A stretch of 64,000 nt of DNA from Octopus sinensis (Eukaryota), in the NCBI RefSeq assembly GCF_006345805.1, contig NC_043009.1:24118001-24182000 (forward strand), read 5' to 3'. Position numbers and translations under genes: made by a program. Positions within the stretch are counted from its first letter, which is position 1, and each line of letters begins with the position of its first letter. This document shows positions 2,460 to 39,908 of this stretch, in pieces. The notes beneath the pieces were generated by a model, which saw only the letters and a program-made list of their open reading frames with translations, was not told where the DNA came from and did not search any database.

Positions 2460-2543
2460 TATGCGTTCGATTCTCAATTGTAGGAACCGGAATATTTATA
2501 GAGGCGTCGCGAAATGGTTACACATTTAAACAGAGATTTCTCA
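2460..2543 (+). CDS. Gene A, 84-nt middle exon of domain 1 (xCVRFSIVGTGIFIEASRNGYTFKQRFL); earlier exons lie upstream of the window
   Basis: Acceptor ttttatttttcag and donor CTCA|gtgagt; phase 1-1; open frame; same 84-nt length and phase as exons 14369-14452 and 35310-35393. Confidence 0.8.
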
Positions 2544-4611
2544 GTGAGTATAATTATATTGTGCGTTAATGAGATAGTGTTAATTTCTTTAAAAAATCGT
2601 GCTAATAGTTCTTTATTTTCCTGAATTTAAGAAGCAAATCCCTCAGTCGGTTAGCATATAATTAACGTTGCTTTCTTCGTAATAAAGATTTTAATTTTCT
2701 TATAATCCTTTTAGCAATCTGAGCCTCAATGTCAGTTGACATGGTGTATCCTGCATCCACAAAACTTTAAGTAATATGGAGTCGACCATTTGTTATAATT
2801 TATATATAAATGTGTGCGTGTTTGAAAGAGAGTGAGAGTGAGTATGCGTGTGTGTGTATGTATGTGTGCATGCGTGTATGAGCATGCATCCGGTAGTAGG
2901 GCCTTAACATGGGAGTTCCAGTCTTTTGAGGAGTATGTAACCCCCTTTTAGCCCCTATTGTTCGCAGGTCTTATCTTATCCGCAGTAGTAGTAATTGTCA
3001 GGCTCCCTGCTACAGGTTAATTGCCATATGAACCACTGGGAGAGAACAATTCCTAATTCTCTTTAGACCTTCCTTTAGACCATGACGTTCGAATAAACTC
3101 TAATAAAACCCTAAAGTGCGGTAGGTTTCTGGTCATGAAGTTCTGTGAAGCTGAAACGTGAGCAGAATGTTGCGAAACACTTTACTTATTCAAAACCAAC
3201 GCTCAAGAACTCCTTGGTCTCTCAGAACGTTTGCATGGACTTAATAGGTATACAGGAAGTGGTCATACTCGGTCACCAGTTGACCATCACCATGTGTGCG
3301 TAGTTTGAATTACTATGCTATGTTTCTTCCTCTATCTTAAATCCTTTCTTACTAATATTGTATTGTTTTGTTTTCTTCTGAGTTTCCAATCTTTGCCATG
3401 CCCCGAATCGCAGAGATTGGAATCCCCCCACACATTTGAAATTCACTTTTTAATTTTGAATTTGTCGTGCACAAATTTTGATCTGAAATCTTGTAATGAA
3501 ACCAATTTAATAATCGATATAAATGTTGGTTAGTCGTTTGTTTGTTTGTTTGTTTGTTTGTTTGGTTGGTTGGTTGGTTGATTTATTGTTTCTCTAGTCA
3601 CGCTTTACATCGTATGGAGGGAGGCGGGGAAGGTGGGGGAAGAGAGTGTAAAAGAAAGATAAATTGCGTGTTATCGTCAGAGGTGCAGGGCGAATGCACA
3701 CACAAGGCTTTATAAAATGTAGTGAGTAAATGAAGGCTAAACATATACACACAATGTGAGAGAAAGAATCACAGAGACAGTGAAGGAGGAGGAGGAGAGT
3801 AAGAGAGATAAAGAGGAAGTTAACATAGAACAGTCATAGACAGCTGCAAACGGCTAAAAACAATTTTGAGAAGTGCGACCGCCTGACGATGAATCATGTC
3901 CCATGCGGTCCCGACCGTGAGAAAGAATGCCCATACCTGACATGAGAGGCGTAAGATGGATGTACATGCAAAGATTGGTGGAAGACATGGATAACGTTCT
4001 TTCAAAATACACATTTTTTTAATAACTTTGAAGACGTATGTTAGTAAAATTTAGAAAAGTAGTGATGTATATTTACTGCAAATACACAAATTGCAAACTT
4101 GTTTTCTGTAATTTGAAGTAATAAATATTTTTCTTTTGAAAAATTGTATTTATTTCATCCTTTTGGTGTGTCAGCACTAAAATTCTTGATAGGAGCTATT
4201 TTATGATTATGTTGTACGCACGACGTATTTCTTGATATTATCCATGGTGTCTAAAGTATATTCCAAAAGCTACTTGTCAGGTAACACTCTGGTATTCTTA
4301 TATCTGAAAAGAGTTACAACTGATACAGTCTATAAACCGAAAACCGAGCAAGACAATGTTAACATCTTTGCTCACTGTATAATGTAGGATCTCTATTTAG
4401 TTTTGATTGTCTGTGTGTGCTCGCGCGCGTGTGCATGTGTATGTGTACATCTATGTGTGTATGTATGTGTATATGTGTGTATATATTTCGGAGGAGAGAG
4501 AGAGAGAGAGAGAGAGAGAAAGAGAAAGAATGGTACATATATATGTAATTAGATATCAGTTTATTTACTTGTTCTTTAATCGCTAATTCCAATAATTTTC
4601 GTGTTTTACAG

Positions 4612-4884
4612 AAGGCTCAGGCACCATGACGTTCGAATACTCCCATCATTATCTACATCTGACGCTTACAGTCTCGGTAGTAAGATCCAGCCAAGAAATC
4701 AAATCATGTTTCAAAATAAACTATAGTGTTGGATTCCGCCGTTATTCAAATAATCTTGGTTGCAACAAAAAGCGCTGGCACTCCAATGAAAATCGCCCTG
4801 TGAAAAACTTGAGTCCAAATATTAAAAGTCTTTCAGAGTTAGAAGGATTTGATTTTGGCCAAATTTACAGAAACGGATACCTCG
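4612..4884 (+). CDS. Gene A, C-terminal exon of domain 1 plus linker (KGSGTMTFEY...LTVSV...SCFKINY...NLGCNKKR...GYL); read-through instead reaches a stop at 4934
   Basis: Acceptor gtgttttacag; homologous to exons at 18165 and 39402 (LTVSV, CF.[IL].Y, LGC). Internal phase-1 donor CTCG|gtaagg at 4885; in-frame TAG ends 4934, with AATAAA at 4963, 4967 and 4975. Confidence 0.8.
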
Positions 4885-38870: not shown

Positions 38871-39401
38871 TATCTAACTGTTGTGAATATGGTCACACGG
38901 TTTTATGCTGGAGACGAACAACATATACGTAACGAGCTTCCACACAATTTCTGACTAACAAATTCACTCAGAAGGCAATAGCCGGTTCTGAGCTCAGAGT
39001 AACTTGCCCAAGAAGCTGCGCATGGTGGAACATTACCCAGAACAACATGACTGCAAAACGAACTTCGTGACCATACATCTACGAGGGAACGTGTGTGAGT
39101 GCGTGTGTGTGTCTGTGTGTGTGTCACCACCACCACCACCACCACCACTACCACTAACAACAACAACGGCAGCAATAGCAGCAACAACATCATCATCATC
39201 ATCATCATCATCGTCGTCGTCATCGTCCTCATCTACCTCCTCCTCCTCCTCCTCATCATCATCATCATACCCTCCCCCGTCCTCCTCATCATCATCAGCA
39301 ACAATGACGACGATGGTGACGGCGACGACGGTGGCAGAATATATTGAAATATTTCTTGTTTCTCTAATTCCTAAATGTTAATTTCTTATATTATTTTGCA
39401 G

Positions 39402-39574
39402 ACGGCGCTGTAACCAAGACCTTCTATATTCGTTTTGGACCCCTACAGTACTGGTTAACAGTCTCCGTGAAAAGCATCACAGATCATTTCGCCAACGTGT
39501 GTTTCAGTCTCAAATACAAAGTATTTAGGGTCATACGGAACGAATCTCTGGGCTGCTTTAGTAAAAAATTTTGA
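39402..39574 (+). CDS. Gene B terminal exon (HGAVTKTFYIRFGPLQYWLTVSVKSITDHFANVCFSLKYKVFRVIRNESLGCFSKKF*); spliced CDS 552 nt, 183 aa secreted DUF4773-like protein
   Basis: Acceptor ttattttgcag, phase 1; TGA at 39572-39574 followed immediately by AATAAA; the four exons join in one open frame. Confidence 0.85.
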
Positions 39575-39908
39575 AATAAAAAACCAGTATAACAAAATGA
39601 ACCGAGTCAAATATTCACTCTTTTATGGGAAGATTGAAACAAAAATTTCTCGAAGGTCAAAGGACTGACTTATGGCGAAGAAAATTCCATGGAAAAATTG
39701 GAATGAGTACAAAAAAAAAATAAATAAATTAAAATAAATAAAATAAAAAAATGATTTATATATTCCGTGAATTATCAATCCGCTTTGCTTGATGCAGAAC
39801 TGATAGTGCTTTGTAGTCAGGGGATCATCCTACCTGTAAGGAGATTAGAGTTTTGTACTTGTTTGAAATAAATAAATGTTTCTCCAGAAAAATCTCAAGC
39901 CTTCAAGA

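Follow-up and report, generated by a model that had tools for sequence, protein, structure and literature searches.

A tandem cluster of putatively secreted, highly diverged DUF4773-related genes in Octopus sinensis

A 64,000-nucleotide (nt) stretch of the Octopus sinensis genome (C13:24118001-24182000 on the forward (+) strand, contig NC_043009.1; hereafter the window) contains a succession of short, symmetric exons that encode cysteine-bearing protein domains, and raises the question of which genes these exons belong to, to which protein family their products are related and what those products might do. Searches of the window and of the 2.72 Gb genome assembly lead to the answer that the window in all likelihood carries two protein-coding genes of a tandem cluster whose putatively secreted products form a highly diverged branch of DUF4773 (Pfam PF15998), a widespread animal domain for which we know of no function or structure. 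The two genes, LOC115218660 (gene A) and LOC115218663 (gene B), are real and already annotated in O. sinensis, and the domain family itself is likewise catalogued; what is new is the link of the cluster to DUF4773, its reduced-cysteine variant of the domain and the fusion gene that it includes. Literature searches by LOC, UniProt and SRR identifiers returned nothing.

A first-pass annotation, made from the sequence alone, had described the exons, their canonical splice sites and a phase-1 exon cassette, and six-frame motif scans together with self-tblastn scans found all of these on the + strand where it had placed them (Table 1). It had also taken three domains, A1, A2 and B, to be homologous, which is borne out by self-tblastn for the acidic exons (A2 against B, E 2e-6) and for the exons bearing a Leu-Gly-Cys (LGC) motif (A2 against B, E 4e-18; A1 against A2, E 6e-7). 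Each domain is encoded by three symmetric phase-1 exons, the first for an N-terminal hairpin, the second, of 84 nt, for beta strands 3-5 and the third for strands 6-9. All internal exons of both genes are phase 1-1 with lengths that are multiples of three, and every exon listed is bounded by pyrimidine-rich ...ag acceptors and gt[ag]ag donors. The description of the family as hidden, on the other hand, does not hold: RefSeq and the independent annotations of Octopus bimaculoides and Octopus vulgaris already carry the genes as uncharacterised proteins.

When spliced, the four exons of gene B encode 183 amino acids (aa), as had been predicted, with 100% identity over the full length to the NCBI entry 'uncharacterized protein LOC115218663 [Octopus sinensis]'. 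Orthologues are present in O. bimaculoides (LOC106872506, 84%) and O. vulgaris, and the former has the same 94/201/84/173-nt exon structure, with gtaag donors and the 84-nt exon at the matching place. The ratio of non-synonymous to synonymous substitution rates (dN/dS) between O. sinensis and O. bimaculoides is 0.35 in the domain and 0.52 overall, and these values, together with the retained exon structure, argue that gene B is functional. In the acidic region that precedes the domain, 10 non-synonymous changes stand against 1 synonymous change between the species, although these are small numbers. The O. vulgaris model of gene B (P0003, 155 aa) lacks exactly the 84-nt exon, exons 2 and 4 being joined at a Y codon (T/AC); it represents either an exon-skipped isoform or an exon missed by that annotation, skipping being permissible because the 84-nt exon is phase 1-1. 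In O. sinensis, the acceptor of exon 3 of gene B and the first 12 nt of the exon (...CATAGATACATTTTTATTTCCACTTTTAG/TGTGTTTACGT) are tandemly duplicated (35188-35232 and 35277-35321) behind a (TTA)n microsatellite, and the upstream copy is a decoy, 89 nt ahead of the real site, whose use would lead to a frameshift.

Whole-genome searches and 188 kb of sequence fetched upstream of the window reveal a tandem array, all on one strand, that spans about 225 kb (C13:23.932-24.158 Mb), has A and B as its final two genes and comprises at least nine genes and ten domains: g1, g2 (LOC115218374), g3 (LOC115218502), g4, g5, g6, g7 (LOC115218395), A and B. The three domains first described are real, but two of them, A1 and A2, belong to a single gene and the family to which they belong is far larger. 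A second small locus, with LOC115227065 and LOC115227066 on contig C1319, shows this cassette too, with exons of 204 and 84 nt, and a spliced transcript contig is known for one of its paralogues; beyond the array and this locus, no further copies were detected in the O. sinensis genome. The cassette is highly regular. When 252 kb were scanned under strict criteria for phase-1 exons of 84 nt, eight matches were obtained, every one of them a family exon flanked by an acidic and an LGC exon; g2 likewise carries an 84-nt exon, and an exon of exactly this length is present in all intact domains. Seven conserved signal exons were identified across the array, and an alignment of the ten cluster domains spans 109 columns and needs only one single-residue gap. 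Such a cluster would have grown by tandem duplication.

It might be argued that some or all of these copies are decaying pseudogenes, or that their gene models are annotation artefacts, given that g4 consists of a lone degenerate acidic exon without the CC pair and that the O. vulgaris model P0003 is without the 84-nt exon. We regard this as highly improbable: A and B have open frames and consensus splice sites, their exon structure is kept exactly in O. bimaculoides, the domain of B is constrained at the dN/dS given above, three independent annotations concur and the second-locus paralogue is represented by a spliced transcript.

The two domains A1 and A2 are encoded by seven coding exons (97, 186, 84, 273, 192, 84 and 344 nt), the first two of which lie upstream of the window, and the resulting 419-aa model of gene A exactly matches XP_029644447.1, isoform X1 of LOC115218660. 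Exons 4 and 5 match O. bimaculoides XP_014775008.1 by tblastn (E 6e-39 and 8e-28, respectively), exon 5 having lost the second Cys of the CC pair, and the only database relatives of A2 are O. bimaculoides LOC106872505 (325 aa) and an O. vulgaris protein (419 aa), both of which have two domains in series; the two-domain fusion is also found in O. bimaculoides. No signal exon was found between A1 and A2 by tblastn or motif scan, and in the domain tree A2 groups with B (support 91/87). In frame beyond the exon-4 donor lies a C-terminal tail ending in a stop (GKENEKENSLIWHKNV), now intronic, with homologous counterparts in g1 and g5, whose tails read ...NENSLIWPKDAEKQ, and in g7, which has ...SENPLVWKMNA. 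This relic suggests that gene A originated by fusion of neighbouring single-domain genes, in which a cryptic donor within the tail-coding part of one gene would have been spliced to exon 2 of its downstream neighbour, an event made possible by the phase 1-1 symmetry of all internal exons. A single-domain isoform of gene A might still be produced via the relic stop. RefSeq isoform X2 of gene A (XP_036364122.1, P0025) starts at an internal Met just before the first Cys (MSCSW...), and therefore has neither signal peptide nor acidic region.

The family to which the domain belongs is not apparent from a direct comparison with Pfam. The gathering cut-off of PF15998 is 27 bits, and B, A1, A2 and the full gene A orthologue have no PF15998 match in a Pfam scan even at E ≤ 10; weak matches to LIFR_N, Gly_radical, Imm19 and CBF_beta were non-colinear and sub-threshold, and were judged to be chance. 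Two other members of the array come closer, PF15998 being the sole family matched by g7 (18.2 bits, E 0.0037, profile positions 9-101) and by g5 (15.7 bits, E 0.021, colinear from the first Cys to LGC, positions 2-112 of 118), with both scores below the cut-off. A profile of the A and B domains, built from database proteins only, was used for an exhaustive HMMER search that retrieved 17 proteins at E ≤ 1e-3 among 1.84 billion. The matches include octopod paralogues, two Argonauta hians proteins and three transcript-derived proteins, P0015, P0019 and P0020, that are related to a cuttlefish protein and match the profile over the full domain (E 1.5e-4 to 7e-4); the long, repetitive matches P0009, P0014 and P0016 were set aside as spurious multi-stretch matches. 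P0015, P0019 and P0020 score 37.3, 33.3 and 37.0 bits, respectively, against PF15998, all above the cut-off, and hhalign aligns the cluster with them over 107 columns (98.5% probability, E 2.4e-15). Because the profile reaches these three proteins, which themselves pass the PF15998 cut-off, A and B can be assigned to the same ancestry: on profile evidence, the cluster is a homologous, highly diverged branch of DUF4773, and is not a member by Pfam's operational threshold. The proposal of a lineage-specific, diverging, putatively secreted family akin to DUF4773 is in this way supported as one of remote homology through cephalopod relatives, whereas the formal PF15998 label cannot be attached to the window proteins. 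The UniRef name 'DUF4773 domain-containing protein', carried by O. bimaculoides LOC106876287, is irreproducible with the current Pfam model and is treated here as a database name only.

Canonical DUF4773 exons also occur in O. sinensis, where they read C-R-C-FHVQ-C-V-C-C and NPPxxC...IC...AC...LGCF, and they agree with the motif that the first-pass annotation had given for DUF4773, the spacing of C-R-C-x4-C-V-C-C being that of C-S-W-x4-G-x-C-C in the cluster. These ten-Cys exons lie at C13:34905942-34928634 (34.906 and 34.928 Mb) and C10:65260879-65284344, and one of them scores 34.3 bits. The canonical C13 locus shares a chromosome with the cluster, at a distance of 10.7 Mb, while the other is on a different one. 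The canonical loci on C13 and C10 likely represent the source lineage of the diverged cluster. Cluster and canonical proteins have in common a domain of about 110 aa, the spacing C-x-[C/W]-x4-[C/G]-x-C-C...C...A-C...L-G-C-F and a phase-1 intron just ahead of the C-terminal half, the acceptor of which falls 7 residues before the Cys in three canonical loci and 8 residues before the equivalent position in exon 4 of the cluster. Gene structure is shared for this exon-4 intron but not for the intron upstream: the intron ahead of the 84-nt exon of the cluster does not coincide in place with that of the canonical C10 gene, whose exon continues past the next Cys to a phase-0 donor. The ten-Cys framework C-x-C-x4-C-x-C-C...C...C...C...C...GC is also not reproduced in full, as its spacing is kept but W and G occupy positions 2 and 3, other residues stand in for the Cys pair of strands 6 and 7, the NPPxxC motif is absent and the window proteins keep only six (A1, B) or four (A2) of the ten Cys. 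The earlier statement that two Cys pairs had been lost is accordingly right for A1 and B, whereas A2 has lost a third.

Between these extremes stand the eight-Cys proteins of decapodiforms, namely P0015, P0019 and P0020 (Logan transcript contigs) and Acanthosepion pharaonis CAE1241059.1. Like the cluster proteins, they have a putative signal peptide, a long anionic region, a C-S-W-R-G-R-x-G-x-C-C hairpin, a cationic beta domain, LGC[FI] and an acidic tail. Unlike them, they keep a predicted fourth disulfide (I-C...C-F), where the octopus cluster has a pair of the Y66/W75 type, and they are more basic (+21 to +27) and pass the Pfam cut-off (33-37 bits). No eight-Cys copy of the decapodiform type was found in the O. 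sinensis genome. The second locus, which is represented by O. sinensis LOC115227065 and LOC115227066, O. bimaculoides LOC106876287 and A0A0L8GLC6, shares with the cluster the four-exon phase-1 layout, the exactly 84-nt third exon, the six-Cys framework and the signal exon, but its proteins are only 15-21% identical to B, their domains are nearly neutral (+1 to +4) and the locus lies on a separate unplaced contig.

An AlphaFold2 model of the B domain, computed on an 18-sequence alignment, has a predicted local distance difference test score (pLDDT) of 86.7 and a predicted template modelling score (pTM) of 0.77, and contains nine strands connected by tight turns. The domain of about 105 aa is thus confidently predicted to be an up-and-down meander of nine antiparallel beta strands. 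Exon boundaries fall in loops of the model, exon 2 ending after the N-terminal hairpin. C1, C2, C5 and C6 are invariant in the family, while C3 and C4 have been lost jointly in A2, g2 and O. bimaculoides LOC106876288 (P0011). In the predicted strand register, C11/C20, C21/C31, W13/G18 and Y66/W75 are directly opposed, and W13/G18 and Y66/W75 are exactly the sites at which canonical or decapodiform proteins have their extra Cys pairs. From this register, the predicted disulfides would be C1-C2, C3-C4 and C5-C6 (C80-C89, C90-C100 and C160-C178 when full-length B is numbered), and the family would have undergone a stepwise loss of cysteines from ten to eight, six and four, with three of the five canonical disulfides kept in A1 and B and two in A2. 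In the model of full-length B, a signal helix (residues 3-20) is followed by a low-confidence helix (residues 31-53) and an acidic linker that is disordered, ahead of the confidently modelled beta domain; no claim is made that the acidic helix docks on the sheet, because its pLDDT is below 50.

Although the model is confident, neither Foldseek, run against the PDB and BFVD, nor a profile search of the sequences in the PDB returned a significant match (best PDB match E 0.034, template modelling (TM) score 0.37), and no DUF4773 structure was found in the PDB by fold or profile search. The best of the weak PDB matches are up-and-down barrels, including YwiB (1r0u; E 0.034, probability 0.94), streptavidin and rhizavidin, and the strands of the domain alternate hydrophobic and polar residues, as might be expected if the meander closed into a barrel of the avidin, lipocalin or YwiB type that carries a small hydrophobic ligand, such as a lipid, pigment or pheromone, in a secretion. 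Such a carrier is unlikely, however, as the superpositions reach TM scores of only 0.31-0.37 with root-mean-square deviations of 6-8 Å, no match has E ≤ 0.001, and the very high net positive charge of the domain is atypical of carriers of this kind. An avidin- or lipocalin-like fold is likewise not claimed, since the best PDB matches (E ≥ 0.034) fall short of the TM score of at least 0.5 that would be needed.

What the proteins might do is suggested by their layout and charge. They begin with a putative signal peptide, continue with an anionic region in which a helix is weakly predicted and then carry the beta domain, to which some members add an anionic C-terminal tail. The N-terminus is hydrophobic and has small residues at positions -3 and -1 (G-A-C/T), features conserved in the seven signal exons, and the cluster proteins are predicted from these to carry a putative signal peptide and to be secreted. 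In B, the domain has a net charge of +14 and an isoelectric point (pI) of 10.1, and the N-terminal region a charge of -11. Across the family, domain charges range from +1 to +27 (at least +5 in all members outside the second locus) and those of the flanks from -1 to -33, and the two scale together (r = -0.79, n = 14). The most extreme charge separation within the family is that of Argonauta hians P0010 (GAB1601733.1), in which Asp/Asn-rich N-terminal repeats of the NIASN(A/F)INDD type (-13) and a tail of -20 accompany a domain of +20.

Two published observations on related proteins bear on where such molecules act. A relative from the second locus, A0A0L8GLC6, is listed in the skin-mucus proteome of O. 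vulgaris, where its level drops in senescence and, in a single specimen followed over time, also in the course of aquarium maintenance (PMC11431876), and a DUF4773 protein is a marker of an oyster haemocyte cluster (PMC12064177). The N-terminal peptide of A0A0L8GLC6 is nearly identical to that of LOC115227066. The cluster proteins may be secreted into mucus or another epithelial secretion. There, the anionic flanks would serve to neutralise the strongly cationic beta domain, whose binding partners would be polyanions, for example sulfated glycans or the envelopes of microbes. We tentatively favour such a polyanion-binding role, in host defence or in the organisation of mucus, because of the cationic domain with its anionic flanks, the relative in mucus and the haemocyte DUF4773 protein, and would place its likelihood clearly short of even.

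Precursors of the defensin type are composed of a signal peptide, a charge-balancing anionic propiece and a cationic disulfide-braced peptide. The cluster proteins resemble such cationic host-defence precursors in that an anionic segment is followed by a cationic disulfide-braced beta domain, and differ from them in that there is no relation of sequence or fold, the cluster domain is three times larger and no processing site was found. It is conceivable, if rather unlikely, that the octopod and decapodiform DUF4773 branch as a whole constitutes a previously unrecognised class of cephalopod host-defence proteins, in which the flanks would keep the domain inert until microbial or mucin polyanions are met; tandem duplication, phase-compatible fusion and the replacement of disulfides by aromatic/glycine cross-strand pairs would then diversify its specificity.

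The same features of charge and sequence can be read in other ways. Strong block-wise charge separation, and the long repetitive Asp/Asn-rich N-terminal region of P0010, would suit a structural or matrix protein in which the cationic domain and polyanionic flanks promote self-assembly or the binding of mineral or chitin, for instance in cuticle, egg coats, statoliths or the argonaut egg-case, but no chitin-binding or matrix domain was detected and we consider this role decidedly unlikely. A putatively secreted, disulfide-braced, lineage-specific tandem array in which the acidic region of B shows the excess of non-synonymous changes described above also recalls a venom or salivary-gland toxin family that has expanded in tandem under positive selection. 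This is very unlikely for the present cluster, as the domain is under purifying selection (dN/dS 0.35), the one relative detected as a protein was found in skin mucus and not in venom, and no toxin family was matched in Pfam or the PDB.

The reading of the cluster as secreted, polyanion-binding DUF4773 relatives has to be set against several observations that count in the opposite direction, of which the missing Pfam match of the window proteins is one. The models of genes A and B rest on annotation pipelines, conservation and selection, and the two-domain gene A could be a read-through model common to those pipelines. The disulfide map is read from the predicted strand register and not from coordinates, and C91/C109 (C5/C6) is one residue out of register in the B-domain model. 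In none of the aligned family members was a dibasic or furin-type site found ahead of the first Cys, so that a cleaved propiece, implied by the 'pro' label given to the acidic region of gene B in the first-pass annotation, is unsupported. The correlation of domain and flank charges is uncorrected for phylogeny, and the proteins of the second locus are close to neutral. Finally, none of the genes of the cluster proper was found in the supplements of the skin-mucus study (PMC11431876). With these points weighed, two genes of a tandem, putatively secreted, highly diverged DUF4773 cluster are still the best and a strongly favoured explanation of the window.

The sequence surrounding the two genes is AT-rich, with many microsatellites and transposon remnants. 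Mariner copies at 23.3-24.5 and 42.2-43.3 kb are mutually inverted and flank gene B, and the open reading frame (ORF) within the first intron of gene B probably represents the N-terminal portion of a DNA transposase. In the third intron of the gene lies a fragment (36822-37553, +) that is 37% identical to the C-terminal part of the ORF of a long interspersed nuclear element (LINE) elsewhere in the window. The interspersed repeat of about 0.55 kb has long homopolymer-codon microsatellite flanks; one of its copies lies in an intron of gene A and three lie in intron 2 of gene B, and another is found upstream, in the g2 region. At the end of the window, positions 60000-64000 (GC 0.42, GC skew -0.33, AT skew +0.20) contain long Thr/His/Pro-rich low-complexity frames on both strands and are probably microsatellite or satellite sequence.

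Table 1. Exons of genes A and B and other features in and near the window. Positions are those of the window unless prefixed C13; a slash marks an exon boundary.
Feature	Position	Strand	Description
Gene A exon 1, signal exon (97 nt)	C13:24104129-24104225	+	419-aa model; 13.9 kb upstream of window
Gene A exon 2, first CxW exon (186 nt)	C13:24114106-24114291	+	419-aa model; 3.7 kb upstream of window
Gene A exon 3 (84 nt, phase 1)	2460..2543	+	A1 L/CVRFSIVGTGIFIEASRNGYTFKQRFL/K; beta strands 3-5, fourth Cys; acceptor tattttatttttcag, donor gtgagta
Gene A exon 4 (273 nt)	4612..4884	+	A1 C-terminal half GSGTMTF...SCF...NLGC and linker; donor G/gtaagg at 4885 joins A2
Relic C-terminal tail and stop	4885..4934	+	GKENEKENSLIWHKNV followed by stop; in frame beyond exon-4 donor, now intronic
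Gene A exon 5 (192 nt)	11674..11865	+	acidic linker; A2 hairpin C-N-W-x4-G-H-C-S; acceptor tatatttacag, donor gtaagtatt
Gene A exon 6 (84 nt, phase 1)	14369..14452	+	A2 L/YVNMTVVPTGIHFHLQLGVRPLLDTDI/H; Tyr in place of fourth Cys
Gene A exon 7 (344 nt)	18165..18508	+	A2 C-terminal half GVLTKTL...VCF...SLGC, acidic tail, stop 18506-18508
Gene B exon 1, coding part	25201..25294	+	ATG and putative signal peptide MMKMVYTVCYLALIFSLGAC; phase-1 donor AAG/gtaagatc
Gene B exon 2 (201 nt)	29908..30108	+	acidic region with predicted helix; N-terminal hairpin C-S-W-KGSS-G-I-C-C
Gene B exon 3 (84 nt)	35310..35393	+	L/CLRVKLSSGEIAIMMRFYRFTLLSEKI/H
Gene B exon 4	39402..39574	+	C-terminal half GAVTKTF...VCF...SLGCFSKKF; TGA stop 39572-39574
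Mariner-type transposase remnants	23347-24535, 42163-43346, 1830-2400	+, -, +	frameshifts and stops; Pfam Transposase_1 E 1.7e-22 for 23508-24272
199-aa ORF, gene B intron 1	28580-29179	+	DUF4817 helix-turn-helix E 1.4e-12; HTH_32 sub-threshold
LINE-type reverse transcriptase ORF, 534 aa	55548-57152	-	RVT_1 E 3.5e-28
Interspersed repeat of ~0.55 kb, four copies	15523-16074, 33152-33700, 33776-34324 (inverted), 34581-35132		~80-98% translated identity

As an account of the octopus genome, these results are an incremental gain in annotation that leaves current understanding unchanged. They tie about a dozen octopus entries known as 'uncharacterised protein' to a Pfam family and to a protein seen in skin mucus, which is useful for work on cephalopod immunity and on welfare biomarkers, and gene A offers a clean example of how symmetric phase-1 exons enable the fusion of tandem genes. 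For the family, one clade provides a natural series that runs through proteins with 10, 8, 6 and 4 Cys, genes with one or two domains, and domain charges from neutral to highly basic, a series that predicts a disulfide map and makes the role of the DUF4773 domain testable.

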